DNA of 64,000 nucleotides from Pocillopora damicornis (GCF_003704095.1 NW_020847159.1:62001-126000); one strand, 5' to 3'; counted from the stretch's first letter, positions 572-60,093 are shown. The notes: generated by a model from the letters alone, not told the origin. Translations and numbers: made by a program.

Positions 572-1387
572 CTCCAAATACTTCTTTGTCCCACGGCAAG
601 GATCGCCAAACTGGCTGTTTGTTGCCTGCAAAAAGCAGCTTCGCTTTCCCTGGCACTTGCTCCTCACTTTATCAATCGACCCAGCAGCTCCACAGTTTGT
701 GGTTTTAACTGGTCCCCAACAGATGTGCCGACCAGTTAAACGACCGTAATTCGCCGACATGATATCGATTTTCTTCGAGGCGGGGCACGAAATGTGCTGT
801 GACCGTCCTTCGCAGATGCGAACGAGCTTATTCTCAGCGCAAAGAACAGTTTTTCCCACACATTCGTACTTCACCTGTGTATGGAAATAGGAACATCTTA
901 TTTTTACAAATTTTACCGAAACAGAACGAGTTTGATATTAGTAAGAGATCTGGATAAAGATCAATGTCCTTAAACGATTATTCGGAAACTGCTTGTGGTT
1001 GAGTCGCGATTGGCTGGCTGGTAACCAATCAATAATCACACTAATGAGGTCACTCGTATCAAAGTTACCATGAACTAAACAATTTCACAGTTGCAAAAAA
1101 AAATAACATTAATCTCTGGAAGCAAGTATTGAAGTGATCCATATCGATTGAATTTTACATGTGAAAAATATATTAGTTATTATTTGCAACATGAGAACTG
1201 GAGCGAATATTTATAATCTAAGTCTTAAGTTGTCCTTCCTTGAGGTGAACTCACCTTTAGATATTTGAAGGTTCCAACACAGGGGTCACCAAACGCTTCG
1301 TTCTTCGCGTACAGAGTACATCTCGTCTGTCCTTGACATTCGTATCTAGCGACGCTCATGGAGCTACCAGCATGGCAGTTTGTGCTT
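572..1387 (-). CDS. Rhamnose-binding SUEL-type lectin, inverted paralogue (partial; two domains visible)
   Basis: Exons 1387-1255 (..STNCHAGSSMSVARYECQGQTRCTLYAKNEAFGDPCVGTFKYLK) and 874-572 (VKYEC...SANYGR...DPCRGTKKYLE), joined by a GT-AG intron. Introns closely match those of the + copy. The 5' end and the last exon fall in N gaps. Confidence 0.88.
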
Positions 1388-1487
1388 NNNNNNNNNNNNN
1401 NNNNNNNNNNNNNNNNNNNNNNNNNNNNNNNNNNNNNNNNNNNNNNNNNNNNNNNNNNNNNNNNNNNNNNNNNNNNNNNNNNNNNNN
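1388..1487. other. Assembly gap (100 N) hiding the 5' part of the minus-strand lectin
   Basis: Run of 100 N that interrupts a lectin exon. Confidence 0.95.
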
Positions 1488-2714
1488 CAATTTCTATTGG
1501 AAAATATTTTACCTTTATTTAGAATCCTCAAGCGCCTCTAGAGAGTGAAAAAACTCGAACGTTGTCCGTTTCGCCGATCCTGTTAACAGAGTATGTAGAG
1601 ATCCAAGCGTGTCACTTAAAAAAATTTCTCTTCGGACTTTACTGGATAAAAATTCAAAATACTGTAGGGAAACTGTAAAATGACGAACGGTTAATGTATT
1701 TACCGTAAAACAATTGACTATATGTACAGGATAGCTCTTGAGAAAGACGATTTTAGAACCGGGTTTTCAGTAATCTTGGAATTTCGAGTCACAGGAAATT
1801 GGTTCGCGGCGCGCGTTGCATCAAGGGTGAAAATGGGCCTTTAAGTAGTCATAACGACAAGTAAAAAAAACAAACAATAATATTCCACAGGTATTTTTAG
1901 ATAAAGCAATTACATAACAGCCACATGTGAGTATTTCTAAATTTCCAAGTTAGTTTTTATGTAGTGACTCACATCAGTTTTTCTTTCCTCAAAAAGAGAC
2001 CCTTTAGAGAACTGATACAGTAAACCACCAAAACAAAAAATCTTATCATATTAGTGTGTGATATTTGTACGTGACTTAACAAAAGTGACAGTGTTTATAC
2101 GAAACATTCAAAATAAATTATTTACTTACGTGGAAAATGTTAAATAACATCTAAGCTTAGATGAGATTCCTTGTATTTAGAAAATGTTCAAACAAAGCCC
2201 TTTGGTAGTCTTCTAAAGATGCACACATAGTTTCTCTCACCACAGTGTCGTTGACGCATTAGACAACAGATCAGAAATTTCAGGGACTTAGAGAGACTGT
2301 TTGAAAACAAAGCAATTAGGTGAGAAGGAAATTTTTCTCCAATTGAATATTTCATCATGAGCTAAGCGAACTCCGGCTCAAAAAAACTTGATCTAAGCTT
2401 ATCCGACTAGAAAACTACGCAATAAAATTTAAACGACCTCATTAAGTCTCGAACTTTCAATCTATAAGATACAATAAGAGGCGTTACATGCGGAAACAAA
2501 AAAAGGTTGGAATGTGTCTAAAAAAATATATCCTTCCACAACTGAAGACATTTTAACTGTTGATTACGAAGAAAATATTCTTATTTCTAAGAAATCAAAA
2601 ATTATTATCTCATTAATTTCACTGAACTTGCAATAATTGTATATATTTGCTCTAAGAAGTCTAAGAACGCTTCATGATTTTCAGATTTCTTTCAGGTTCA
2701 AGTCGAAAGGAAAG

Positions 2715-5700
2715 ATGTTGGGTTTTTTAACTCTCTCCCTCCTTACAGTGGCGTTTGCCAATCCAGGTATAGTTTCCAGTAAAAAAAAGGCTTGATATTA
2801 CCCCTCGTTTTTTTGGTTAAGTAAACTGAAATATCCTGATCTCGGCCATTCTTCGAACTCACCAAAATCACACTCCAGATCTCTTTAGAAAGAAGTTATG
2901 GACACGAAGGAGAGGCTTAGAAATTTTCAGGATTCCAAAAAAATCATAGCCGAGATATAATACCAAGATAATATCACAGAACAGGTAATAAGAAACGTGG
3001 ACGGGTTCGACTTAAGAGAAGGAACTTTTAACAGACACATTTGCAGTAAATTTTGACATGTTTAGTCTTTATCTCAGTTTCCCGGCTAGGAATTCAAAAT
3101 TTCACTTACAAAGCACAAGAATCATCGTTGTATATTGTGGCCGTAATTTATCAATCAGAAAATGTAGTTTTTCTCCTAATTTAAACAAAGATGAAAAAAG
3201 ATCAATCTCTCGGACACATTAACCGAGCCCCTACGTGATGCTCTCTCTTTTTGTCACAGCGGAAAAGACAGTTTGCGAACATGAGCACATGACAATTGAC
3301 TGCAGAGGGTTAGACATCAATATATTGAGCGCATCCTATGGCCGCACCCAACAAGGTGTCTGTGATCGAGGGGGAAGCACAAACTGTCATGCTGATAGCT
3401 CCATGAGCGTCGCTAGAAACAAATGTCAAGGACAGACAAGGTGTACTTTGGACGCGAAGAACGAAGCGTTTGGAGACCCCTGTGTTGGAACCTTCAAACA
3501 TTTAACGGTGAGTTCACCTTGAAGAAGGACAACTTAAGACTTAGATTATAAATATTCGCTCCAGTTCTTATGTTGCAAGTAATAGCCAATATAATTTTCA
3601 CAAGTGAAATTCAAACGATATGAATCACTTCAATAATTGCTTCCAGCAATTAATGTTATTTCCTTTTTGCGACTGTGAAATTGTTTAGTTCATGGTACTT
3701 TGATACAAGTGACCTAATTAGCCTGATCACTGATTGGTTACCAGCCAGCCAATCGCGACTCAACCACGGGCAGTTTCCGAATAATCGTTTAAGGACATTG
3801 ATCTTTATCCAGATCTTTTACTTAAATAAAACTCGTTCTATTCTGGTAAAATTTGTAAAAATAACATGTTCCTATTTCAACACATAGGTGAAGTACGAAT
3901 GTGTGGAAAAAACTGTTCTCGTTCGCATCTGCGAAGGAAGGTCACAGCTGATTTCGTGCCCCGCTCCGAAGAAAATCGATATCACGTCGGCGAACTACGG
4001 TCGTTTAACTGGTCCGCATCTCTGTCCGGGACCAGTTAAAACCACAAACTGTGGAGCCGCAGGGTCGATTGATATAGTGAGGAGCAAGTGCCAGGGAAAG
4101 CAAAGCTGCTTTTTGCAGGCAACAAACGGCCAGTTTGGCGATCCTTGCGTTGGGACAAAGAAGTATTTGGAGGTGATTATAGTTCAGATCTTTTAACCAA
4201 AATCAAACTCGTTCTGTTTCGGTAAAATTTGTAAAAATAACATTTTCCTATTTCAATACATAGGTGAAGTACGAATGTGTGGAAAAAACTGTTCTCGCGC
4301 ACATCTGCGAAGGAAGGTCACAGCTGCTTTCGTGCCCTGCTCCGAAGAAAATCGATATCACGTCGGCGAACTACGGTCGTTTAACTGGTCCGCATCTCTG
4401 TCCGGGACCAGTTAAAACCACAAACTGTGGAGCCGCAGGGTCGATTGATATAGTGAGGAGCAAGTGCCAGGGAAAGCAAAGCTGCTTTTTGCAGGCAACA
4501 AACGGCCAGTTTGGCGATCCTTGCGTTGGGACAAAGAAGTATTTGGAGGTGATTATGGGTCAGATCTTTTACAAAAATCAAACTCGTTCTGTTTCGGTGA
4601 AATTTGTAAATTTAACATATTTCTATTTCAATACACAGGTGAAGTACGAATGTGTGGAAAAAACTGTTCTCATGCACATCTGCGAAGGAAGGTCACAGCA
4701 GATTTCGTGCCCTGCTCCGAAGAAAATCGATATCACGTCGGCGAACTACGGTCGTTTAACTGGTCCGCATCTCTGTCCGGGACCAGTTAAAACCACAAAC
4801 TGTGGAGCCGCAGGGTCGATTGATATAGTGAGGAACAAGTGCCAGGGAAAGCAAAGCTGCTTTTTGCAGGCAACAAACAGCCAGTTTGGCGATCCTTGCG
4901 TTGGGACAAAGAAGTATTTGGAGGTGATTATGGGTCAGATCTTTTACCAAAACAAACTTGTTCTGTTTCGGTAAAATTTGTAAAAATAACATGTTCCTAT
5001 TTCAATACATAGGTGAAGTACGAATGTGTGGAAAAAACTGTACTCGTGCACATCTGCGAAGGAAGGTCACAGCATATTTCGTGCCCCGCTCCGAAGAAAA
5101 TTGATATCAGGTCGGCGAACTACGGTCGTTTAACTGGTCTGCCTCTCTGTCCGGGACCAGTTAAAACCACAAACTGTGGAGCCGCGGGTTCGATTGATAT
5201 AGTGAAGAGCAAGTGCCAGGGAAAGCAAAGCTGCTTTTTGCAGGCAACAAATGGCCAGTTTGGTGATCCTTGCGTTGGGACAAGGAAGTATTTGGAGGTG
5301 ATTATGGTTCACTGTGTTATTTTAGATATTATCAGTCCCCACCAAACAAAACTTTGATCTAAAAATTACCAGGGGCGTATCTTTTCATGGAAAGTGAATG
5401 ATTGATCAAAAACACACTAGCATGCCCTTAAATGCTAGACTGGACAGTTTTGAACGACGACAGCATCACATTCCCCCCCCCCCTCTCCATTTTACACCAT
5501 GAAAATTGCCAGAGATCACCATTTGAATTAAAGAAACTACAATGTTGGGTGAATTGTATTGAACACTGATACAAACATCCTATTTAGACTTCCAACCTAC
5601 TTAACTGGCGTGGGTTCTTCTATTCTCCTTTCAATGATGGATTTTACAAAAATACGAACTCTTGGTACCTGAAGCTGTTTTGTCAAATTTACGCTTTGCA

Positions 5701-5965
5701 GGGGGTGGGACGAAATTCACGACTGGCAAAATTCCCAACCGTGGTAACCAAGGTTGTAACTCACTCATTGTGAGGAAAATTTCATTATGATCAATTGGTC
5801 TTCAAAAAACTTACACAAGGCGAGACTTACAATTGCACAACAACCTTGAACCTAAGCAAAAAGCTAAACAGACTAAAGCATGAACAAACCTGGAGGACAT
5901 ATAAAAGAAACTAACTTGCAATTAATCGTATCGTTTCACAGATCAAATACAGATGTGACTGGTAA
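2715..5965 (+). CDS. Secreted L-rhamnose-binding lectin, 5 tandem SUEL/Gal_lectin domains, ~487 aa
   Basis: Exons 2715-2766 (signal peptide MLGFLTLSLLTVAFANP), 3260-3507, 3888-4172, 4264-4548, 4639-4923, 5013-5297 and 5942-5965 (IKYRCDW*). All are GT-AG and frame-consistent. Each domain has the A-x-YGR and DPCxGTxK(Y/H)L motifs and the SUEL cysteine pattern. Confidence 0.93.
3810..5311 (+). repeat. Tandem array of 4 near-identical ~375-bp intron+exon units
   Basis: 285-bp exons start at 3888, 4264, 4639 and 5013, separated by introns of 91, 90 and 89 bp. Confidence 0.95.
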
Positions 5966-6285
5966 AGGATTCCACTGAGTATTCCAAGCGTCAACCAGTG
6001 AAAACAAGTGATCCCATGTAGTTTTTGTAGTTTACGTATCAGGGACCATTAAAAATAATTTTCGACGCCAATGAATGTCTCCGTGTATTCGTTTCTTTGT
6101 GGAAGTATTGATAGCGTTCCAGCGGGTCATTTTTGGTGTTTTACATGCTCGCCGATTTGGGACGAGTTGGGGAGAGGTTTACTGGGGATCTGGCACTAAC
6201 AATTTCCTCATTACTAGTGCCACCTCTCTCGCTCGCTTGTACTGTTCAAGGCCTCACATTCGCTGGCGTGCACCGATGTGCCACT

Positions 6286-6483
6286 AAACCTTTAACCCCT
6301 AAGAGTGTCTCGCATTTAATTTCTCCTTACCATATCACTCCTGAATCAAAAAATTGAGGTCAGGAGAATAAAGGAGCTGATCACCCACCAAAAAAGCTCT
6401 TGATTGTTAGACAAATTCTCCATGTCGGCATCTCAGGAAATGCTTAGAGAACAGTGTGTAGAATATGCATAGTAAAGGATTAA
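6286..6483. mobile_element. ~200-bp TTAA-CCCT...AGGG-TTAA MITE, subfamily A (piggyBac-like ends)
   Basis: Same internal sequence as copies at ~11250-11450, 13487-13698, 13703-13914, 37692-37825, 44712-44900, 46741-46910, 60731-60940 and 63090-63284. Ends are TTAACCCTT/AAGGGTTAA-like. Confidence 0.8.
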
Positions 6484-6914
6484 TTAGGGCCTGTTCGCAA
6501 GTTAAAGTGTTAAATTTTGTTAAGATTATTCCAGCAGGAATCCTGGCAAAATCCCATCAGGCTCCAGGGAGGAATCCTGCGCAATGCGTGATACAGTTGT
6601 TTAAGTGTAGGTCAGTAATGGCTCCCGTGTAAAGCCTAAAAGTCAGAGAGGGCGAAACTTTCGAGGCGGGGTTCAGATTTAAGTTGAGGGTATATTTACA
6701 CTCTTTTAAAACTTTCGGGTTTTTTTTAACCATTGGTGGATGTTAAATGGAAATTTCAAAACTTTGTTAGAAAAGTGTTTTTGACTGAATAATACCCACT
6801 AGTAAACAACAAACTATCGCTTTCTTTATTTTTGCTCCCACTTCCCGCCCTCTCTCGCCCCCTGTTCTCCCGAGCTCCCGCCCCCCTGTCCCCCTCCACT
6901 ATCTCAGTGTTACT

Positions 6915-7690
6915 AGGTACCTTTTCAGGAACGCTAAGTTTCCTATCAGTATCCTGATAAGATCCTTATGAGAATCCCACGTTGATGCCGGGGAGATTCC
7001 AGTAGGATCCCAGAGGGCTGCAAAGATATTGTATGGGTGTACCTTTTCAGAAACGTTAAGTTTTCTGTCAGTATTCTGGAAGAGGTTGCGTGACGCGTGA
7101 TGGCCCCAAAATTTGCGAGATAACTAATGAGCCATATATGAGATCAAACTACGAAAAAATTGTCAAAACTACGACTACTGACTTATTAAACAATAAACTA
7201 TGATGACTATGATGCCGGGACGAACACCTCAGGTGTTAAATCTGTGTGCGATACTAGTAAAGTACGATTTGATATTGCGATACGAAGCCTAAGTAAACGC
7301 TCTCAGGGCGTCTAGTTTCAACAAGTAAGTCGTCTTTATTTTTCTGGCATAAAGCAATATGACAAGTGATACGCAATTCATTCCAGGATAAGAAAGGTTA
7401 GATGCAATATAATTTTTAATCATACATCCGATAGGTTGAAATCTTACAGTATTAGCTTGGCGGACTTACTCCTTTTTATGTGACGTGTGATTGGTTAAAA
7501 AAAATTTCCGTGATGCGTGATTTAGTAGAAAAATTCAGCGTGATGTGTGACTGGAACCCCCTCTTTGTCACCCTCCAGGCAAGATCCTTATGAGGATCCC
7601 ACAGTGATGCCGTGAGGATTCCGGCAGGATCCCAGCGGGTTGCAAAGAGCTTTCGAACGAGGTACCTTTTCAGAGACCCTAAGTCTATGT
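6915..7690 (+). repeat. ~120-bp tandem repeat (GTACCTTTTCAG...GATCC-rich) interrupted by a ~500-bp GCGTGA-rich insertion (~7080-7578)
   Basis: A unit is seen at ~6917-7037. The next unit breaks at ~7079 and resumes at ~7579 (caagatccttatgag). Confidence 0.65.
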
Positions 7691-9311
7691 CACTTTGGAC
7701 AGTTTCATTTAACACAGACGGACTACCATCTACCACTTTAGTAGTATCCGGTGGGCGTTTATTCGCAGTTTACTCACGTAACTACAAAATTAATGCACAT
7801 ATATGGAAAAACACACGCAACCCCGACTGACACTTGTAGGAAATTTTTTCCTTTTCAAAGTCATAATTAATTTCATAGGGAGGTAGTTTCTCGCTTCAAG
7901 ATTATAATCATGACGCGCCCTGCTAAAAAAAATCGCATTAGTGAAAAGAAACACAATTTTGGAGTTGTCTTTCTTGGGCGGGAATTACTTAATTTTCTTA
8001 CTAGGACAACTGTCGAATATTTTGCCAATATTTTCGGAGGCTTTTAGGCGGTAGCTCTCCCCTTTGAGTTCCGAAAAAAGTAGTAAAATGATGATGATGT
8101 TAAACACCATTTAATTTCTCGTCAGACCGCACAACATCCCTACAGGAAAACAAGTCTTGAAGACATCTTTCAATACTGTGAGATATAGGGCAAGGACGAC
8201 ACCGCACCGGAAAATCGGTGTTCATGAACTCTCAGAAAGCTTTCGTTGGGTTCGGCTTTAGCTGAGCGGGTCTGTACTTTAAAACAAAAATGCGTTCAGG
8301 TGTGAGATTTAAAGTTAAGATTTCAAATTACGCGACTTTGAGATAAAGGTTTAATTTGATTAAATCTATCTCTGCAAAGTGAAGATAAGCGCATGTCGGT
8401 CCGATATCTAAAATTTGGTTTTATAATTATGTCACGTTTCATCCGTCTTACATCACAGTTCACTTCAATCGCTTGACAGGGTCAGGCTAAACATCTCTTT
8501 TGTCGTATCAGGTATACTTCTCATTTGCGGCAAGATATCATAGCCGTTCTGCGGAGGGCACCTTATTATGTAGTAGGTAATAAGGTGTCATAATTCTCAC
8601 TATATCATGAAGACAAATGCTTATCAAGCACACATCCTGTTATCGCTCCTACTTCGGGGAGTTCACGCGATTTACGCGGGTTTCGCGGCGCCATTTTTCT
8701 TGTATTTTAAATTTCGAGTTATCAAGAGGTTCCGGAATTTGTTTACATTCTATTCGCCGTGTTTATTCTGATATTCTCTTTAAGGCTTCGCTTGGGAAAA
8801 ATTACGCCACTCTTAGTACAGAGCAGAGGCGACATTATTCCTTGTGTAAAAGTCGCACAAAAGTCGGAATGCGCAAAACATTGAGGAAGGGGGAGGCACT
8901 CATTTGATTTGTGGGGTATATCCTCCCTAGTCAAACTGTGAATTTCCGTTAAGTTATTTGAAGCAGTTGAGGGAACTTTCAGAAAATTTCAATGATTCTT
9001 GAGAAAATCAAGACATACCGAAACAACTAGCCAGTGAAATAAAAATATTCACGACTTGCGTCTTAAAACCTAAAAATCTGTCTACCCCTCTAAGATATTT
9101 TAAATAACTTCCCTACCACCTACGGGCATGTTATAGGCATTACTCAAGTTTGTTTTTGTGATCAGTCAAAATCAATCATCAGCACTGTGTGCGTAACTAC
9201 TCATTATCGTAAAGCGTCGCGACCGCCTGTTCGCCACACAACGTTACTTGAAGCCTCGAATCTTCAGCATAAGACGTGAAAGAAGGAGAGAGAGAGAGAG
9301 AGATCGTTCCG

Positions 9312-12300
9312 ATGTTGCCCAAAAAGTTTTCTATAGTGGTAGATTTAGGATGTTTTCTGATTGTAAGTATAGTAAATGCCTTTTTGGCACTCATAACCCC
9401 TCCATTCAGACGTGGGTTTTTTTGCAATGATGACAGCATTAAATACCCGTTCGTCAATGAGGAACTTCTTCCCACTTGGACGTTGCTGTTAGTTTCAGTT
9501 ATTCTACCGGTTTTTACGGTAAGTGTTTCTGTTTCAATGTCATTTTATTAAAACAGTGTTGAAATATGTTGTTAGTGATGCTAAGAACACCTTTAAACAA
9601 TAAACAACGCACTCGATTATTCCATTGATATTAATGTCCGCTTATTGTCGAATTAACTCGTGAATTAGCGCATTCCGTGACGAATATTGTTTAAGTTATA
9701 AGCATCGAGGCCATTAGGAGTCACAAAAGCTTCTTTTCACGTTGTAAGCTAAGATTTAAAAGCAATATTAGAGACGAAAAACAATAAAGGATTAAATAAG
9801 ATGCCGTATTAAAGAGCCCGGCGCTTCCTGTGGTAACTCAAAGGGTCTAAAAACATCTCACGTTTACCATTTTTGGGTTTCCAACTGTTTGAACTATTTC
9901 AATCCACAAGTTAAGTAGTGGTTAAAATAAGACTATCGTTTTCACGATTTGAAGTTAGAGAGTTATTGAATCGCAAAATAAGAATGAAAATTTAGCTAAC
10001 AAACCGATTATTGACTGAAGGGAACAACAACACTAGCGCATGAGGAAGTTTCTTTTGAATTTGTTGCCTTGAATTCAAAGATTTCTAAAGGATTGTTTCT
10101 CTCGTTGATAAGCTTCTACCATGACAGTAAATTGATTTCTTGAAGAAATTTCTCACGGATTATCGAGAAATGAACCCGAAACATACTAGTGAGCAATGGC
10201 TGACGTCAGACACGCTGTGAGGGAAAGGGGAGGGGGTCTGAGGGGAGTGGCATTGGGAGAAGTGAAATTTGATTCCCTATTCTTCTCTCCTGTGGGAAAA
10301 ATCTCTGGGAAAAGTACAGATATCATTTGATCTGGGTTGGACGAGTTCAGATGAGTACTTCCCTTGTGTCAGCTGATATACATTTTGTTGTAAATTTGGG
10401 AATTTGATGTTTCATGACTTTTCTATGCTGAGAAGTTACATGTCAGTTACTTCTGGCATCTTAACATTAACAGCTTATTTAGGATTTTGTTTTAGTTTTT
10501 CTGTCTTGTATGCAATGTAGACCTTTTCCCACAGTAAATACTTGACACACCTTTTTCCTATTTTTTTGGTTTACATTTTCTGATAAGAATTATTTAGCTT
10601 TACTAAAATATGACCTTGGCTTCAGGATATTGAAAAAAAAATTGAAACACTAAGAAACACTCCTCTTCAGCCAAACTGGTCCAATATTTGATCATTTTGA
10701 AGGATTAATACTTCACTGTCATGGATCATGTAAATTATATCTTCTAGATGTATTCAATCTTAATTTATCACTGCTGTAGTTATTTTAATGTTGCCACAGT
10801 CAATAAATCCATCAAAAATCAAAATAGCTAGGGAAAATTGCCAGCTCTCATCACAGTTTATTGCAGTTGAATAATATCAGATCATTAACAGTCATAGCTA
10901 AAATTGTATTTTTTTTAACTGAATTAGATCATCATTTGCGAAGTTGGAAGGCAATACCAAAATGGTCAAAATACCAAAAGAGAACAATATCAGAACAGTG
11001 AAAACAGCACTGTCTGCGGGTCATGCATGAAAAAGCCGTTATTCCAGAGGTAACACAAATACAATGATTTTATTATGGTAACAGCACTGGGTGGAGATAT
11101 ATTCAGTCTGTGATCATACAAGTGATTGATGCAACCAGACAACTGCTAGGCAGTAGTTAGATTTGTTAATCTTGTTATATCATTACAGATTGAATTGGAA
11201 GACACAAAGTCCTGCAACCAAATTAGAGATGAAGTGTCTATTGATTTTCTCTTTAAGACTACAAAGCAACTGGCTTCTAATATCTCCTTACAATATCACC
11301 CTTGAATCAAACAGAAAGGTTATCAGAATAAAGGAAATGATCACCACTTTAAAAAGCTCCAGATTGTCAAACTATTTCTCCTTGTCAGTACCAAGGGAAT
11401 ATAGAGAAGACAGTGTGGAAAACATGACTACCAATGTTAGAGTGTTGAGCATATTCAGAAGTAAAAAAAACATCAGTGGTGACTTTTTTTTTACACAAGA
11501 AAATGCTCTAACAATGCACCCAATTTCAAGCATGACACACACGCTGTGTTATTAAAGCAAATTGAGCTGCTTATAACTAATTGCATTTAAGAATTTCATT
11601 ATAATTTTATTTAACTGTTTTATAAGTAAAACATATCAGAATGTGATGATAAATCATAGCCATAAGACCCACCAATCGGATTAATTTCTCCCAATTCTTT
11701 TCAGGTTATTTAAAACAATGTCTTTATTCTTATACGGCTCACTAATTAATCTGCTCATCACACTGCTTGGGAAGACATACGTTGGTGAATTAAGACCCCA
11801 TTTCCTGGCGTTGTGCAAACCAAACATGAGTCTAATTGACTGTAACCAGGGATACATTACAAACTATGAATGTACTGGCAGTAACCTTGATGCAATTGAA
11901 AAAGCCAGGTAAGAAACAGTGTTTAAAATATGTAATGTGAAATTAGGGAGATAAGTCCAGAAATGTATGCAGTAACAAAACTGGAAAAAATGCATCAAAA
12001 CTGTAAAATCTGCCAAGCTGACTTTGCTTTGACGTATTTGATGAAAATTCAACACAATTTTCAATTCCACCAAACTGATTTTCCTTTGAGGAATTTAACT
12101 AAAAATTTGCCAAAATTGTCAAATCCATGAACTTTCTCTTGGTTTGATGAAATTTTGCCAAATCTGCCATTTTCCCTACTGCATGTAATTCTGGACTTGG
12201 GTGAAATTAGGATCTGTCAAAACAAATTTAGAAATATTTTACTCATTGTATTAAGATATCATTATAACAAATCATAAATAAACGTTAATTAGTATTTATC

Positions 12301-51159: not shown

Positions 51160-53174
51160 TTTTGTTAAATTTTGACCTTCGAAGCTTCCTTGCCGTAAAC
51201 GTAAATAGCAGTTTGCGCTATTGCAAAAATTTCGTTGAGTCCATATTGCAGTATAGGGTTCTTCGATATGAATACTTCAGACAATGCCCACGAAACCACC
51301 TGTTTCTCTTCATTTTCCCCAAAATGTTCGATTTATTTCGCTGAAGAATTCTCTTCCTTCATTACTAGCGAATGTTTCTGAGAAAACAAGGAACCATAAT
51401 ACTAATTTCGTCGATTCTCTGTCAGGAAATGATGACTTCACTTATACTCTGTTCCAAGTTCATAACAGATATCACGCAAGTAGGCATGCGTGACATGTTT
51501 GACTGCTGACCGGAAATGTAAAATATTGGAGGGTGGTTCAAAAAGTAATTGATAAGGTAACGCAAGATCACCTTGAAACAGGATTGACAACATACAGTTC
51601 CATCACTAAAAATAATTAGTTTCACCACATGGGCTTTTTCCCAAGAAGGTGGGAAAAAGCAGATGTTGTTCTGTGATAAATTTCCCTTCTCAAGGCAAAG
51701 TTATATTCTATATCAAGTTCCTCCTTATATAATCCCACAATCTTTTAAAAAAAAACCATTATCCAATAGTTCTGAACAGTTTCAGCTCTAAAATACCAAT
51801 CAAGCATTGAGTATTCACTAAGACCACTCTGATGATCCCATGATCCCATCTTTCAAAACAAGGTCAATTTTCCACTAGGTCAGCAAAGTTTATAGCCTGC
51901 CCCTAGTATTCTCCAAACTAGGAATTTTAGATATTTTCCAAGTCAATACATTTGAAATTGCCAAATTCATGTTTTATCATAGAAATAACTTATTGCCTCC
52001 ATTGCTTCTCAATCTTTTTGTAATGAATAGCCAAATTCACAACTATGGTACCAGAACAGCCAGTAATTATTGAACGCATTTATACCATACAAATCTCAAG
52101 CAATTTACAATTGTCTTAAAGAATAATGGTGCATACATTAGATTTAGGGTGACCTGGTCTACCCTCCTTGATGTTACAAAATTAATTGCACTAAAATCAC
52201 TTAACATTCAATGGGTACTTAAAATATTTTATTTCAATAAGGACATCTTTGAAATAACATCTCTAAGACATCTGCGATTTGGTCATGGAACTACAGTAAA
52301 GAATTAAAAAAAATTTTAAGACTCTTGGACTATTATAAATACATTTTTCCATATTAAGTGAGTGCACTTTGTGCGTGGTTTGACTTCATTTCAAATGCTC
52401 ACAGTAAGTTAATATCACAGTAAAAATTCAGAAACCATGTAATTACAAGATGTATATTTTCATAGATGATAGATAAAGAGATAAATTCCCTGAGTAAGGG
52501 GAAAGGTTACATATGAAAGAAAATCGAACAAAAAACAAAAGAAAGACTAACTTAAGGAATAGTGCTACACATTCTTGTGAAAAAAAATTGTGATAAACTG
52601 AACTGATACAAATTGTAATTTATGATAAAATAGAGAATATTTCCTTTTAATTGGGTATGGATGCTTTCCACAGAATCATTTCATCTCCCATGCACCTCCT
52701 TCAACTATAGAGTGTTTAACCATTAAATGGTTAAACCATAAAAAGTTAAATTTTAACACCCAGAAGTGATTAACATTTAACTTCTCCCCATAATATTGAT
52801 ACATCTTCCAGCAAAAAGGTAAAGAGAATACTAAGACTTATCAGGTAGACACCGTCATCTTGATCTAACACTAAATTCTCATAACTAATCTACTAATAAA
52901 TGTGTAGCAGCTAGAGGGGAGAATTAAGTATTAGATCCTGGGAGTTAAAGGGTTGAGGGAAACATTGTGTTCTTAACACCACACTAATTGACTTTCTTCC
53001 TCTCAAAAGAAGATTATGATCTGCTATCATTAACAATAATCACATAATGCTGGTAAAAATATGTCTTGTGAATGGATAAAACTATATTGACCCAAACCAA
53101 TGTTTTGCAAATTTGCTTATGACTATCATCATCTTTTCTTCACATTTTGCTATTTTTTTTTTTCAAGGTCTAGT

Positions 53175-54419
53175 TCAAAACTCTAATTTCTTTGGAATTT
53201 CCCAAGTGAAACCTGGCTTAAAATGACCATAAACACTTGTTGCCTTGAAAATGGGTTTGCGCAGGTCTAGATCCCTAATGATAGCACCTGGCCTTAGATC
53301 AAAATTCTTTTGGATGATTCGCAAAAGCTCATCATCTGACATTTCACTACTTCCATAGCTAAAAACAGACACTGACAAAGGCTCTGGAATACCAATTGAG
53401 TAAGATACTTGTACTAATGCACGCTTACAAAGCTTTGCTGCAACCAATGACTTTGCAATCCACCTACAGGCATAACTTCCTGACCTGTCCACCTTTGTTG
53501 CATCTTTACCTGAAAATGCCCCACCCCCATGAGCTCCCCACCCCCCATAAGTGTCAACAATAATTTTGCGCCCTGTCAGGCCACCATCAGCCATTGGACC
53601 ACCGAAGAGAAACTGCCCTGCAGGTAACAGATGATAGACTGTTTGCTCATCAAGGTATTTTTCTGGGATTACACTTTTGACAATTATCTCTTTCAAATAA
53701 TGCCGGATTTCTTCTGCAGACATGCCACGCGCATGTTGACTTGAAATCAAAACAGTGTGCACTCTTTGAGGCATGCAAGCACCATCTTTCATACTGTATT
53801 CCACAGTAACCTGTGTCTTACCATCAGGTCTGAGCCAAGGCAAAGTTCCGTCTCTGCGACACTCTACTAGTCTTTGCACCAGTCTGTGTGATAGAACAGT
53901 TGTTAAAGGCATAAGTTCCTCGGTTTCATTCGTTGCATATCCGAACATCAAGCCCTGATCTCCAGCGCCTATGTCCAAATCCTTCTTATCCAAGTGCACA
54001 ACTCTTGCGATTTCCCCAACTTGCTCTTCGATGGAAAGCAAAACGCTGCATGTTTTGTAATCGAAGCCTTTAGAAGAGTCATCATATCCAATTTCCTTTA
54101 TGGTATTTCGGATAACACTTTGATAGTCAACCTTCGCTCCAGATGTAATCTCGCCAAAAGCCATAATCATGCCAGTTTTTGAAGCAGTTTCGCAAGCGAC
54201 TTTCGCCGTCGGATCTTGTTCCAAATGAGCATCTAAAATCGCATCAGAAATCTGATCACACATTTTATCTGCATGTCCCGGGCAAACTGACTCTGAAGTG
54301 AAGAGAAACTTGCTGCGATCGCTTGCACCAGTCAAGAAAGAGCGATTTAAACAAAATCTTGCTACTGAAGCAGACTTTGTTGGAATGATTCGAGCTAGCT
54401 TTGCTTTAGAACTCCACAT
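53175..54419 (-). CDS. S-adenosylmethionine synthetase (MAT), single exon, with a putative mitochondrial presequence
   Basis: 414-aa uninterrupted ORF with [33 protein letters not shown] and [32 protein letters not shown]; metazoan-type C-terminus WEIPKKLEF. Minus-strand AATAAA at ~52228-52233. Confidence 0.97.
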
Positions 54420-54828
54420 TTTGAAAAGATGTTATCCTCTCGTGACTGAGTATTACGTAGAAATACTCAAACTCGGAAGGAGAAAAGCTTAAAAAAAAAA
54501 AAATTGCGTGAGTAAGCAAACTTGCGTGTGGTGCAACCCTGTCGTGTAAACCCAACGCAATCGCAATGCAACAACAGAAAATCAATACTTTGTCGCTGAA
54601 ATTTGTTTCGTGTACGTTTCACTCTTAAAAACGATATTTTGGGTTAAAATAATGAGCTGATAATGAGAGATATTTAATCTGAAACGAAAGCATTGATTTC
54701 AAACCTGAACTCATGATAATATCCATCTCTGATCCAATCGGAGAACTCCGTAGTAATTCGGGATATTCCGTCTTGATGGTCGGAAATATTTGCCTTATAA
54801 ACAAACTGTATCTCATTTCCGTTTCAAA
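54420..54828. promoter_or_regulatory. Shared divergent promoter region MAT/NALCN
   Basis: 409 bp between divergent ATGs (54419 and 54829); CpG-rich; CCAAT at ~54734; repeated TTGCGTG/CGCAA motifs. Confidence 0.65.
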
Positions 54829-57800
54829 ATGGAAGCAAGAGGACAGTCTGTTGTAATCGAGTCCGATCAGCATTCATCGTCGCAAACTTTATGGCCTCTT
54901 CGCCAGACACTTTATGCAGAATCTGTAGGAACAGATGATGAAGAGAATGAGGACGAGCTATCTCGAACTTGGTGGGTGAAAACTCGCTGGTTTCAGCGTC
55001 TTGTTCAAGTGTGTGCCGTAGTCAGCCTGACTTCTACAGCAATGAATTCGCCGGAGACGTTTAAAGAATCCGGCTCACTTCAATACATCACTCTTGTATT
55101 GGATATTGTTGTTGCAGTTGTATTTATTACCGAGATGATCGCTCAGATAAACATGTGGGGTCTATGGAAAAAACAGAAGGCCTACTTCAAGAAACCGCAG
55201 TGCATATTTAACGCTAGTATGGTTTTCCTCATAATACTATCGATCTTGTTTCAAGTAATTGAAATTTCAGGCCATTCTCCCGATCCGGCAGATTACATTG
55301 CATTTTCTATTCCAAGAGCCCCAAGAGCTCTTATTATTGTTCGATTCTTCAATGTTCTCATCACAATAAGCTTGCCAAAGACAGTTGCTCGCCGATGCAA
55401 GCGACAGATCTGGGCTGTCACTTTATTTTTGTTATACTTCATGGCATTCGCTTCAATCATCGGCGTTCAATTATTTGGACGAAAGAATTACTATTGCGTG
55501 AAAAACGGTGCTGATTTGAATAATGTTACATACAATGATGTTTTACTCACAGACCATCGATGCAATAATGACACCGGTGAAAGAGGCTATTTTTGTCCTA
55601 GAAATTTCAGTTGTGTCTTTGTCGATTTTAATAAAAAGGACAAAGACTACTTCGGCGATTTTCTTCGCAGCATTTTAACCGTGTACGAAAGTTCCACTCA
55701 AGAAGGCTGGGTTCTTGTCATGTACAGAATGACGGACTTTCGATCTCGTCCATTAGTTTATGTTTATTTTGTGTTGCTTATTTTCTTCATTGCCTGGCTC
55801 GTGAAAAACGTCTTCATTGCTGTCGTCTCGGAAACCTTTGCCGATATTCGGAGCCTGTATATGTATAGTCGGAAATCTTCGAAGCGTACTTCGGCTCGAC
55901 TAGCTTCTCAAGTCATCAAGGAGGGAGGAACTGGTTGGCATTTAGTATCGTTAGATCATGAAGCACATAAGGGACACGCACCACTGCCTGTTAGACAATT
56001 AGTTAACTCTAGTTACTTCAAATACACAATGATCTTCTTTGTTGTGGTTGATGCTATCGTACAAGCAGCTTTGAAGTTTCCCTGGAGAAGATACCCACAG
56101 TTCGGGTTTACCATACTTTTCGACTTGGAAGTTCTTCTTAAGATCTCATGTATGGGTTTTCGGCCTTTCCTTCTTCGTAAAATGCAATTGACAGAGTTTA
56201 TATTAGCTGTTGGTAGTACTGTTTTTGCTTTGCCACTTTTGATCTCCGAGAAAGCTACTTTCTTAGCTTTCTTTAATGTTATGAGGATAATACGACTTGT
56301 TGGGGCAATACCGAGTTTGCAAGAGTTCTGTGAAAAAATCTTTGGTACGGGAAAAAAGCTCGGAGCGGCCATTGTATTTACGCTGTTTTTCGTCATGGTT
56401 TCCGCCGTGATCAGTATGCAGTTCTTTCTGACTTTGGATCCTAAGAAATTCGGGACCTTTATGCTGTCAGTCCAGTCCATGTTTCAGATTATTACTCAGG
56501 AAGGATGGGTCGAAGTTTTAGATGGACTTATAAATGCCACTACCAACACCTTTGCCAAGATTCTAGTTGCGATAATCATCTTGGCATGTCATCTTTTCTC
56601 GTCGCTTATCATTATGAGCGTATTTGTTGCAGTCATCCTGGACAACTTGGAACTTGACGAAGAGGTGAAGATCATGAAACAGAAGAAAATGGGCCAAGAG
56701 AGCCGAGAATCCACCGAGGAACTTCCACTGCGTCTTCGGGTCTTCGAGCGTTTCCGGGATGACCCGCGTCTTGTCAAAATGAGTAGGATTAAAATGTCCG
56801 CGGATTTTTCCACGCCTAAGATTCGCGACAGTTTCATGAAGAAGTTTATAGACGGCTCTAGCGTGGAAACAGCACTAGCTGTTGATCCACGAAAGCAGCT
56901 CGGGGAGACTTCGCAGCTAAGAAGGCGGCGGACTGCAATTCCTATAAAGCTTTTAAACTCGACGGTATCTGAGGTGGATAAGCTTTCGAAGTTTGTCCGC
57001 AAGCAGTCGAGTATTACTGCGTTGATCAACGATTCCAATCGCCGAAGAACGTATGCGCTACTTTCACCTACCGAAGTTTCCCCGAGGAGCGCTGCAATTC
57101 AAGGCAGCAACAACAACAAACAGCAGCCGACGTCAGTCTTCCGATCTGCGTCGAGGCGATTCCGGAGCCGCCCGCCTCCGTCTCCGAAACCAGCTCAAGG
57201 TAATCCTCAGGTCATGAGAATGGCCAGCCAAGCTACAGGTCTCCACGCCCAGTTGAATCACGATGACACCAACATCGGGCGAGATTTCGACATCCAGTGG
57301 GTTCGGGTCAGACGTGAAGAGGTTCAGCGGAAAAAGAAAGCTCAAATTGACAAGCTTCGCGAGAATCATCCCTACTTTGACCAGCCTCTCTTCTCCCTGC
57401 AGCGTGACTCATGGTTTCGGATATTTCTTCAGAGCTTAGTGAACGCGCGTTACTCAATTCCTCCTGGTTATACGGAGCGGGCGTCACGCAATAACATTGT
57501 CACGATGGCACGGCTTCAAAAGTGTCTCGCGTCACAGACGTACCTGGAGTGGATAATGATCATTGTTACGCTTATCTCTTGCATTGCTATGATGCTCGAG
57601 ACTCCAACCCAGCGAACCTTTATGAATTCTTCAACAGAAGTCGTCGAATACATTTTCGTGGTTGCCATGAGTTTGGAACTGGGTGTTCGAATCCTTGCGA
57701 ACGGTTTGATCTTCACGCCTAATGCCGTTATTCAGAACTTTGGGGGTGTCCTTGACGTCACTACGTACCTCGTGGCACTTGTCTATGTTTCCTGGCAACC

Positions 57801-60093
57801 ACATCCGATACCTGCCCGCTCAGGGGCTCAAGTGTTGATGGTTTTAAGGTGCCTTCGTCCATTGCGCATTGTCACATTGGTGCCTAAGATGCAAAAGGTG
57901 ATTCTCGAGCTGGTGGGTGGCTATAAAGAAATACTTAAAGTTAGCGCACTACAGTTGCTGCTCATGTTCATCTTTGCCAGCTATGGTGTTCAAGTATTCG
58001 CTTTCAGATTTGGAAGCTGCAACGATCGCACGAAAAATACCCGAGAGGAGTGCATTGGAACCTTCGAAATAGAGATCGCCCCACCTCGTGAACTACGCGA
58101 CCTTTCAGGGACGTCTACAATCCTTGTTCCTCGTGTATGGAAAAAACCCAGAAATTTTGACTTTGATAACGTCATCCACGCATTTCTGGCTTTGTTTGAA
58201 GTTCTTTCCTTAGAAGGTTGGCTGGAAGTGCGAGATGTGATCCAAGCAGTGGTGTCTCCTGAGTATAGTCTGTATGTCCACATTTACGTACTCATTGGAA
58301 GTATGATCGGACTAACTTTGTTTGTTGGAGTAATTGTTATGAATTTTAACGAGAACAAAGGCATCGCGCTTCTCACTGTTGATCAACGTCGCTGGCAAGA
58401 CTTGAAGAAGCGCTTGCGACTCGCACAACCTCTTCATATTGCGCCAAGACCGAGAAAAGAGGGGATTCGTGCCGTATTATTCGACGCCACACAGTCAAAA
58501 ATATACAAAGGTATCGAAGTCATTTTGGTGGTTGTTATCTGCTTGACTGTTACGATTGCTCAGTGGACCACTGAAGACAACCTGCGCCTGCGAGACGGCT
58601 TGACCAGCACTGCAGCGGCGTGTTCGATATTCTTCGTTGTAGACATGGTTCTCAAGATTATCGCCTTCACATTTCAAGGATACTGGCAAAGCCGGAGAAA
58701 CCGGTTTGACCTGTTTTTGACGAGCCTTGGAGTGTTGTGGGTAACTCTGAATTTTTCTCTTAAAGGGAGTGGTATGCCGTACACAGTCACCACCGTGTTT
58801 GGAATGGTGATAATCCTGTTCCGTTTCTTGACGCTTGCTGGTAAACACGACACGCTCAAGATGTTAATGTTGACCGTTGTCATGTCGCTAGTAAAGAGTT
58901 TCTTCATCATCTCTGTTCTTATCATCATTATGGTAAGCTACTCGCTCGCTGGTGTGATCTTATTCGGCACAGTCAAATACGGAGAGGCGTTAAATCGCCA
59001 TGCCAACTTCAAGACAAGTTTCTATGCTATGATACTGTTGTTTCGAATCACCACCGGAGAGGACTGGAATAAGATCATGCATGACTGTATGATATCGAAA
59101 CCGTACTGCACAGAAACGCCTGATACGCCGAATTTCTGGCAAACCGACTGCGGCAACAGTGCAGCAGCGCATATTTACTTCATTTCGTTCTACATTTTCG
59201 TAACATTTGTCTTCCTGAACCTTTTCATCGCTGTCATCATTGAGAATTTTTCGCTTTTCTACTCCAGCGACGAAGATTCTCTTATAAGCAACACAGATCT
59301 GAAGGACTTCCAGTTGACTTGGAACTTGGTGGATAAGAGTCGTAAAGGCGTTTTATCGGTCCGACAAGCTAAGCTTGTTCTTCGCTTACTCAAAGGCCGT
59401 TTAGAGGTGGACACAGGGTCGCTCTTGTTCAAGCACATGTGCTGTGAGATTGAAAAGCTTCGCAATGGCTGTGATGTTTCATTCCATGATGTCTTAGGAG
59501 TGCTAGCCTATCGATCTGTTGACATCAGCCGCAGCTTGCAACTCGAGGAGCTGCTCGAGCGAGAAGAATTAGAATACCAAATCGAGGAAGAAGTTGCCAT
59601 ACAAACAATTCGTGACTGGTTCGTCAACCTTCGTAAGAAGCGCGTCGAGCGGGAATGGATTCGACATTTGGAGCAAGGAGGAATCCCATTGGCTGGCGGT
59701 TTCCAGTTTGATAAAAGCCCTGGAGCTTCAAGCGTAGAGAGCTTGGAACACTCAGCAAATGAAGACCAAGATCGAGAAGACCGTGACACAGAACGCGAGA
59801 TTCGTGATCACGAAAGCAGTGAAGATGACGATATTTCACTGTCATCCCCTTCAAAAGGACCGGCGATTCTCCTTTCGGCCCCACCTCCGGTTATGAAAAC
59901 AGAGCGCAGCATTTCTACACCTCGTAAGAATTCTGTTACGTTTCCAGAAGAAGTCTCGATGTCACCAAAACGAAGAAAGAGTTTACCCGAATCTCTAGCT
60001 AATTCTAAGTCGCGAAGGAAAAGTTTGACTGAAGTGAAGGAGTTCGCGGGAGAAGTTCGTGATTGGTGGAATACACAGGAAAATAATCCGTAG
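54829..60093 (+). CDS. NALCN: NALCN sodium-leak-channel family, four-domain channel, single exon, 1754 aa, EEEE filter
   Basis: First ATG is at 54829 (the track start at 54790 is TTG). Four 6-TM repeats with charge-poor S4s; pore motifs STQEGW, ITQEGW, LSLEGW, TTGEDW. NALCN signatures VILDNLELDEE.K.KQ, LRENHPYFD.PLF, LLTVDQRRW.DLK.RL..AQPLH, ENFSLFYS, EREELEY.IEEEVA.QTIR.W. Confidence 0.97.
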   Translation: MEARGQSVVIESDQHSSSQTLWPLRQTLYAESVGTDDEENEDELSRTWWVKTRWFQRLVQVCAVVSLTSTAMNSPETFKESGSLQYITLVLDIVVAVVFITEMIAQINMWGLWKKQKAYFKKPQCIFNASMVFLIILSILFQVIEISGHSPDPADYIAFSIPRAPRALIIVRFFNVLITISLPKTVARRCKRQIWAVTLFLLYFMAFASIIGVQLFGRKNYYCVKNGADLNNVTYNDVLLTDHRCNNDTGERGYFCPRNFSCVFVDFNKKDKDYFGDFLRSILTVYESSTQEGWVLVMYRMTDFRSRPLVYVYFVLLIFFIAWLVKNVFIAVVSETFADIRSLYMYSRKSSKRTSARLASQVIKEGGTGWHLVSLDHEAHKGHAPLPVRQLVNSSYFKYTMIFFVVVDAIVQAALKFPWRRYPQFGFTILFDLEVLLKISCMGFRPFLLRKMQLTEFILAVGSTVFALPLLISEKATFLAFFNVMRIIRLVGAIPSLQEFCEKIFGTGKKLGAAIVFTLFFVMVSAVISMQFFLTLDPKKFGTFMLSVQSMFQIITQEGWVEVLDGLINATTNTFAKILVAIIILACHLFSSLIIMSVFVAVILDNLELDEEVKIMKQKKMGQESRESTEELPLRLRVFERFRDDPRLVKMSRIKMSADFSTPKIRDSFMKKFIDGSSVETALAVDPRKQLGETSQLRRRRTAIPIKLLNSTVSEVDKLSKFVRKQSSITALINDSNRRRTYALLSPTEVSPRSAAIQGSNNNKQQPTSVFRSASRRFRSRPPPSPKPAQGNPQVMRMASQATGLHAQLNHDDTNIGRDFDIQWVRVRREEVQRKKKAQIDKLRENHPYFDQPLFSLQRDSWFRIFLQSLVNARYSIPPGYTERASRNNIVTMARLQKCLASQTYLEWIMIIVTLISCIAMMLETPTQRTFMNSSTEVVEYIFVVAMSLELGVRILANGLIFTPNAVIQNFGGVLDVTTYLVALVYVSWQPHPIPARSGAQVLMVLRCLRPLRIVTLVPKMQKVILELVGGYKEILKVSALQLLLMFIFASYGVQVFAFRFGSCNDRTKNTREECIGTFEIEIAPPRELRDLSGTSTILVPRVWKKPRNFDFDNVIHAFLALFEVLSLEGWLEVRDVIQAVVSPEYSLYVHIYVLIGSMIGLTLFVGVIVMNFNENKGIALLTVDQRRWQDLKKRLRLAQPLHIAPRPRKEGIRAVLFDATQSKIYKGIEVILVVVICLTVTIAQWTTEDNLRLRDGLTSTAAACSIFFVVDMVLKIIAFTFQGYWQSRRNRFDLFLTSLGVLWVTLNFSLKGSGMPYTVTTVFGMVIILFRFLTLAGKHDTLKMLMLTVVMSLVKSFFIISVLIIIMVSYSLAGVILFGTVKYGEALNRHANFKTSFYAMILLFRITTGEDWNKIMHDCMISKPYCTETPDTPNFWQTDCGNSAAAHIYFISFYIFVTFVFLNLFIAVIIENFSLFYSSDEDSLISNTDLKDFQLTWNLVDKSRKGVLSVRQAKLVLRLLKGRLEVDTGSLLFKHMCCEIEKLRNGCDVSFHDVLGVLAYRSVDISRSLQLEELLEREELEYQIEEEVAIQTIRDWFVNLRKKRVEREWIRHLEQGGIPLAGGFQFDKSPGASSVESLEHSANEDQDREDRDTEREIRDHESSEDDDISLSSPSKGPAILLSAPPPVMKTERSISTPRKNSVTFPEEVSMSPKRRKSLPESLANSKSRRKSLTEVKEFAGEVRDWWNTQENNP

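Follow-up and report, generated by a model that had tools for sequence, protein, structure and literature searches.

The window analysed here, 64,000 nt of Pocillopora damicornis DNA (GCF_003704095.1 NW_020847159.1:62001-126000; positions are counted from its first letter), carries on its minus strand a complete, single-exon gene for an S-adenosylmethionine (SAM) synthetase (MAT) that begins with a basic extension of presequence character. The coding sequence (53175..54419, -) is an uninterrupted open reading frame of 414 amino acids closed by a TGA stop. The three MAT Pfam domains follow one another in the expected order, each of them full-length and scoring far above the gathering threshold: the N domain (PF00438) at residues 37-133 (E 1.1e-40), the M domain (PF02772) at 150-270 (E 1.3e-44) and the C domain (PF02773) at 273-407 (E 3.7e-60). 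The protein also aligns end to end with the structures of human MAT2A, human MAT1A and rat MAT1A (E ~1e-180); in the numbering used below, window residue n corresponds to MAT2A residue n-20. By its domains and catalytic residues the gene is a nuclear-encoded member of the MAT family. Pfam, the clade profile described below and structure alignment delimit a catalytic core of N, central and C domains, F38-F414 (53178..54308, -), preceded by codons 1-37 (54309..54419, -), the extension. A preliminary description of the locus had reported these 37 residues as basic and rich in Ser, Ala, Lys and Arg, with D34 as the first acidic residue, and re-reading the 414-codon frame returned exactly this.

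The start codon, ATG 54419, is transcribed. Evidence comes from contigs over 52300-55300 that were assembled from four RNA-seq runs (poly(A)/oligo-dT libraries, three studies); such contigs can give neither the transcription start nor the strand. One 1775-nt contig of run X7 covers 52897-54690 and holds the entire coding sequence with a 271-nt leader (54420..54690, -). In runs X1, X2 and X6, contigs of 6.7-7.0 kb extend from within the MAT coding sequence across the intergenic region into the neighbouring gene, NALCN. The RNA contigs contain no splice joint inside the MAT gene, and ATG 54419 and its upstream leader are present unspliced. The initiation context has A at -3, and an in-frame TAA lies five codons upstream (54432-54434). 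The 273 nt upstream are free of further ATGs, the nearest one being out of frame at 54693. The next Met, M53, falls past His49 and Asp51 (aligned with human MAT2A His29 and Asp31), as the preliminary description had it in placing M53 beyond the catalytic His. Thus, no truncated cytosolic form started at an AUG would keep an intact active site. At NCBI, the Acropora and Nematostella orthologues are modelled with the extension, and some automatic gene calls in public assemblies begin at M53 (362-aa cluster members).

Relatives of the window protein form a sharply bounded group. A protein search returned 16 clusters at 69-83% identity, all with long basic extensions, followed by hundreds of ordinary animal MATs at 66-70%. 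A profile built from the 14 best members recovered exactly those 16 clusters at 795-868 bits, with a gap to the next match at 729 bits. Members include Nematostella vectensis P0013 (428 aa), Acropora millepora XP_044164095.1 and A. cervicornis KAK2554612.1 (both 418 aa), and the range takes in complex and robust Scleractinia together with Actiniaria; the remaining clusters derive from coral or anemone assemblies. Two annotated octocorals (Dendronephthya and Paramuricea) contributed only short-form MATs among the matches listed, octocoral genomes themselves not having been searched, and the protein search matches included no clade member outside Hexacorallia, where genomes were likewise not searched.

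The clade is monophyletic in a tree calculated on core columns with the extension trimmed (Shimodaira-Hasegawa-like approximate likelihood ratio test, SH-aLRT, 98). The free tree sets it outside the hexacoral cytosolic MATs and beside two sea-star MATs (SH-aLRT 91); we read that position as poor resolution or a long-branch effect. Joining the clade with the hexacoral cytosolic MATs is not rejected by the approximately unbiased test (p = 0.20), so that a duplication in the hexacoral stem and an older duplication are both possible on these data. The clade is old, and in both Scleractinia and Actiniaria it evolves under purifying selection.

The extension is the feature that sets the clade apart. 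In the window protein, the 37 residues before FLFTSESV include 8 Lys/Arg, 9 Ser/Thr and a single acidic residue (D34), for a net charge of +7. In all 19 clade sequences the extension measures 35-57 aa with a net charge of +5 to +10, 6-14 Ser/Thr and 0-3 acidic residues, mostly at its C-terminal end. The N-terminal regions of cytosolic paralogues and other animal MATs range from -5 to +2. The same searches gave 144 other MATs, whose median N-terminal region has 15 aa and a net charge of -2; none is comparable to the clade extension. The sole strongly positive cases in this set are three mis-annotated gene models, from birds or platypus, in which a GC-rich 5' untranslated region (UTR) is translated before the normal MNGQLNGFHE start. 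By this comparison, the extension is not a chance feature.

Its mode of evolution differs from that of the core. Across the six lineages with DNA, identity is 17-41% in the extension versus 73-85% in the core, and between the window gene and five orthologues the non-synonymous divergence (dN) is 0.57-1.43 versus 0.09-0.20. Synonymous divergence (dS) is saturated in the core for every pair, so dN alone is reported and no dN/dS ratio. The open frame, length class and charge pattern of the extension are, by these measures, maintained while its sequence is almost free to vary. Mitochondrial presequences typically evolve in this way, keeping composition while sequence drifts. Their usual composition (15-60 residues, net positive, almost no acidic residues, rich in Ser, Thr, Ala, Leu and Arg) is found in the window extension and in 19/19 clade sequences.

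MPP-type cleavage is described by R-2, R-3 and R-10 motifs. Residues R26-S-F28-L-T-G31-A-S-D-R35 (54315..54344, -) fit R-x-(F/L/I)-x-x-(S/T/G)-x4 exactly, with R26 at -10, F28 at -8 and G31 at -5 relative to a cut between R35 and S36, and together with the clade alignment they mark a candidate MPP/MIP processing site of the R-10 type. The C-terminal third of the extension, in which this site lies, is better conserved than the rest and reads R-x-[YF]-V-[TS]-G-P-Y-S-[AT]-[ST]-D-R in scleractinians; the window sequence lacks three residues in this part. Most clade members retain an Arg followed by [YFV]-x-[TSA]-G, with its register shifted in anemones. Such conservation fits a processing site or the mature N-terminus. 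The preliminary description had proposed an exact R-10 match and two-step cleavage to S36. The match stands for the window protein, but it is approximate in most other scleractinians, which read R-S-Y-V-T-G-P-Y-S-A with Tyr at -8, and fails in anemones. Two-step cleavage is thus plausible for the window protein and not clade-wide, and because the fit is not shared across the clade, the mature N-terminus predicted at S36 may be off by several residues.

The catalytic core is that of a MAT. The roles of the catalytic His, the Mg-binding Asp and Lys, the GAGDQG motif and the loop are known from MAT structures. Aligned with human MAT2A, His49, Asp51, Lys52, GAGDQG (G151-G156) and the 16-residue loop G298-S313 are invariant in the clade, as are ~190 other positions. 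Clade-wide replacements affect six positions whose conservation in 143 other MATs is at least 93% (MAT2A numbering): Gly26 by Cys, Asn or Ser; Pro30 by Ala, Ser or Thr; Ser114 by Val, Ala or Glu; Asn161 by Thr, Cys or Ala; Val204 by Leu; and Val361 by Ile. In the window protein, Cys46 and Ala50 stand for Gly26 and Pro30, and the otherwise invariant GEGHPDK around His49, Asp51 and Lys52 becomes CPGHADK (54264..54284, -). The two basal clade members retain GEGHPDK. We regard CPGHADK as a variant motif that, on the alignments, gives no ground for exclusion from the MAT family, and the variant enzyme is assumed to be active.

Ser114 (MAT2A/MAT1A numbering; window residue 134, 54018-54020, -) is Val, Ala or Glu in 16 of 17 clade members. 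In mammalian MATalpha1, Ser114 is a CK2 site whose phosphorylation controls mitochondrial targeting (PMC8799735). We treat its replacement here as a coincidence worth noting, not as evidence.

Gene order supports the orthology of the clade. In every contig examined (the Nematostella chromosome OW051985.1, three long ENA contigs, two metagenome scaffolds and one further contig), the orthologue is single-exon and lies head-to-head with a large Ion_trans gene. Its counterpart in the window is the divergent neighbour NALCN (54829..60093, +; 1441 bits to human NALCN), intronless, with a single 1754-codon open reading frame 409 bp from the MAT gene, which serves as the synteny marker. The conserved pair is strong evidence, at the level of gene order, of true orthology, and it shows the MAT gene to be old and not a recent retrocopy. 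An intronless copy beside an intron-containing paralogue in the same genome, the arrangement by which retrogenes are recognised, is present. The intronless state next to such paralogues fits an origin by retroposition, which the tree neither confirms nor rejects. Nematostella and five other hexacoral contigs keep this divergent pair; in the P0014 contig the channel gene was called in two pieces. Bacterial sigma-70 promoter patterns scanned for in the intergenic region are irrelevant to an animal gene and were disregarded.

The regions flanking the coding sequence vary between RNA data sets. Within the leader, a T12 tract and its flank (54469-54503) differ by -14 nt and -4 nt in X7 and by -1 nt in X1, and an A11 run 14 nt past the stop codon varies by 1 nt (53153). 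The probable 3'UTR runs down to an ATTAAA at 52651 (52651..53174, -), and RNA contigs reach 52300. Over 52704-53006, RNA depth rises from ~50 to 1000-12000 in all four runs (summed contig depth, with many short contigs and loose ends), a pattern pointing to a high-copy repeat, probably a small transposable element, that lies within the 3'UTR or directly behind it.

The genome (234 Mb in 4393 contigs) was searched for other MAT genes and for the mitochondrial SAM carrier; the cytosolic MAT and carrier genes were read and searched exon by exon, not as joined spliced models. A second, intron-containing MAT of cytosolic type (G000:C905:87375-91639) matches exon by exon over ~4.3 kb, and its first exon is identical to the N-terminus of Pocillopora meandrina P0036, which marks the genome as that of a Pocillopora-like stony coral. 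Cytosolic-type MATs of stony corals and Nematostella (P0025, P0027, P0034, P0036, P0049 and P0058) have an upstream Met that adds ~23 acidic residues, and the added stretch closes with P-x-K-[RK]-[FY]-K-M directly ahead of the usual start; judging by the motif, this form may be an alternative-start isoform with a patch resembling a nuclear localisation signal (NLS). A third locus (G000:C3277:7709-8623), also intron-containing and of cytosolic type, is similar to P0053 (GKDFSKV), the 391-aa form of Stylophora. Matches were confined to C-terminal exons of this locus, which may be partial, may be a haplotig or may represent a second cytosolic paralogue.

The SAM carrier SLC25A26 is present as well. 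A genome scan with Pfam Mito_carr gave 102 exon-level matches, the SLC25A26 locus not among them; a motif screen of 36 loci taken from these matches found no obvious SAM carrier; and an exact degenerate DNA pattern for D-T-I-K-T-R-L-Q had no match in the genome. Allowing one mismatch, the pattern led to an exon in locus L057 (G000:C2223:18732-21755, -), where the coral reads D-T-L-K-T-R-L-Q. Downstream exons contain NPFEVVKQRAQ and GVRGFYRGY, and at least four small exons are visible. A search with the frame of the first L057 exon returned 142 short proteins, among which every specific carrier name is S-adenosylmethionine mitochondrial carrier SLC25A26; a mouse fragment is 74% identical. The identity came from this sequence search, an ESM Atlas look-up of the exon having given generic "mitochondrial carrier" clusters only. 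SLC25A26 is, on these matches, retained in the coral genome, and to infer its absence from the scan, the motif screen and the exact pattern would have been wrong. Exon-level family scans overlook genes with short exons, which is how the Mito_carr scan missed it.

The preliminary description had inferred a mitochondrial MAT paralogue, to be judged by whether orthologues keep a basic extension, whether a separate intron-containing cytosolic MAT exists and whether ATG 54419 is transcribed. The basic, acid-poor extension is kept across the hexacoral orthologues, cytosolic-type genes are present at C905 and C3277, and the ATG lies within unspliced poly(A) RNA contigs. These sequence-based checks support the paralogue, its localisation being predicted. 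The tie to osmolyte or sulfur pathways that was also raised there is speculative.

The extension is, as read from these alignments, real, old and conserved. We think it likely that the window gene encodes a hexacoral-specific, functional MAT paralogue with a cleavable presequence that is imported into the mitochondrial matrix; from the features above we infer import, the cleavage site, that the enzyme with its variant HADK motif is active, and its role in physiology. Under this proposal, the protein would be translated from ATG 54419 with a cleavable N-terminal presequence, enter the matrix and be trimmed by MPP, possibly then by MIP/Oct1, so that the mature enzyme would begin a few residues before FLFTSESV. 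There, alongside import by SLC25A26, it would use methionine and ATP to produce SAM for methylation and radical-SAM reactions. Because the carrier is retained, a matrix MAT would add to import, not replace it. We also lean, with some reserve, towards the wider view that hexacorals have for hundreds of millions of years had a second, organelle-internal SAM supply beside SLC25A26, encoded in a bidirectional pair with NALCN.

Several observations weigh against a matrix enzyme. With SLC25A26 retained, there is no gap in SAM supply that calls for one. The hydrophobic moment of the window extension is moderate, with a maximum of 0.42 over 11 residues (0.35-0.92 in the clade). An AlphaFold model shows residues 1-35 as unstructured and not helical, at low confidence (predicted local distance difference test score, pLDDT, <30 there); the model, from AlphaFold2 on the 14-sequence clade alignment, has a mean pLDDT of 50.5 and a predicted template modelling score of 0.48, too poor for judging the extension or the variant active site. 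Anemones read V-R-N-V-S-G-P-Y, which does not keep the R-10 register and is closer to a loose R-3 site. Of 17 clade members, 15 have other residues at Gly26 and Pro30, two positions with 100% conservation across 143 other MATs. Finally, the RNA contigs read through into NALCN in three runs and, being assembled, are blind to start and strand.

Some of these points would suit an extension that is translated and conserved in character for another purpose, such as nuclear or nucleolar localisation, membrane binding, regulation, or dual or other targeting, with the enzyme acting outside the matrix. Mitochondrial targeting is backed by composition and motif only, the model lacks an amphipathic helix, and the register of the cleavage motif differs between orders. 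Yet the extension has neither the hydrophobic core of a signal peptide nor the clustered Lys/Arg block typical of an NLS. Near-total exclusion of acidic residues, richness in Ser, Thr, Ala, Arg and Leu, and an Arg followed by an aromatic or hydrophobic residue and then by small residues 10-16 aa before the fold make up the standard pattern of a presequence, which persists in 19/19 sequences while the sequence drifts. The cytosolic paralogues, moreover, bear a different, acidic extension with the PxKR[FY]K motif. We consider a non-matrix role unlikely.

The replacements at Gly26 and Pro30, with those of the gating-loop Ser114 and of Asn161, could instead signal a protein that is imported but no longer mainly a SAM synthetase, a regulatory or moonlighting MAT-like protein. 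Against this stand the invariance of His49, Asp51, Lys52, GAGDQG, the 16-residue loop and the ~190 further positions, the low core dN (0.09-0.20, with saturated dS) and the two basal members that keep GEGHPDK, and such a loss of function appears distinctly improbable. Least credible of all is a mis-called start, or a retrocopy passively expressed from the NALCN promoter, with an extension devoid of biological meaning: the gene is intronless, shares its 409-bp intergenic region with NALCN, is merged with it in RNA contigs of three runs and is started at M53 by some automatic calls, but a start at M53 would delete the first strand together with the catalytic His, the reading frame offers no alternative ATG and is closed by a stop five codons upstream, it is open from the upstream ATG in six lineages even with extension dN near saturation, the NCBI models of Acropora and Nematostella include the extension, and strong purifying selection acts on the core throughout Scleractinia and Actiniaria.

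If the matrix assignment is true, hexacorals would be a lineage-wide exception to the widely held rule that animal mitochondria depend wholly on imported SAM, and would give the first clear example, at the level of genes, of an animal with an enzyme dedicated to SAM synthesis within the organelle. The enzyme family is known and no new kind of system is involved; the interest lies in the conflict with the rule on the source of mitochondrial SAM. Within the matrix, SAM is needed for methylation of rRNA, tRNA and protein and for ubiquinone and lipoate synthesis. Hexacorals, including the tractable Nematostella, would then be a natural system for asking what a matrix gains from its own SAM and by what means S-adenosylhomocysteine (SAH) is then removed. 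Coral stress physiology is also touched, since the metabolism of methionine, betaine and dimethylsulfoniopropionate is actively studied in corals. Acropora millepora has two MATs, both up-regulated in low salinity, for which compartment was not addressed (PMC5557254); these salinity-responsive enzymes have so far not been distinguished in that respect.

Full-text literature searches yielded no description of a presequence-bearing MAT in cnidarians or any other animal, and for two protists the predicted mitochondrial proteome includes the SAM carrier and no MAT. Compared with animal cytosolic MATs (human MAT2A and MAT1A, and the coral gene at C905), the window protein shares the three-domain fold, a core that is 66-69% identical, the catalytic His, Asp and Lys, GAGDQG and the phosphate-binding loop. 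It differs in its 37-aa basic extension, where the cytosolic enzymes have a short acidic N-terminus, in its intronless gene, in its separate clade and in the replacements at G26, P30, S114, N161, V204 and V361.

The closest precedent for location is mammalian MATalpha1, reported inside hepatocyte mitochondria, a finding that challenges SLC25A26 as the only source of matrix SAM (PMC8799735). MATalpha1 is an ordinary cytosolic and nuclear isoform that partly reaches mitochondria, its targeting regulated through Ser114 phosphorylation and PIN1, and a presequence is never mentioned for it (PMC8799735). Both cases place an animal MAT in mitochondria, there by report and here by prediction, but the coral form is a separate gene that always carries an extension resembling a classical presequence. 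The carrier route, in which SLC25A26/Sam5 exchanges cytosolic SAM for SAH (PMC9239748), serves the same end, the supply of SAM to the matrix. Whereas the carrier transports SAM made in the cytosol, the coral MAT would synthesise it in place, and the two routes would coexist. We know of no presequence-bearing MAT pair in animals or yeast. Pairs of cytosolic and mitochondrial paralogues, one member with a presequence, are familiar from MDH, GOT and SHMT, and the coral MATs would resemble them in their history: duplication, followed by gain of a presequence on one copy.
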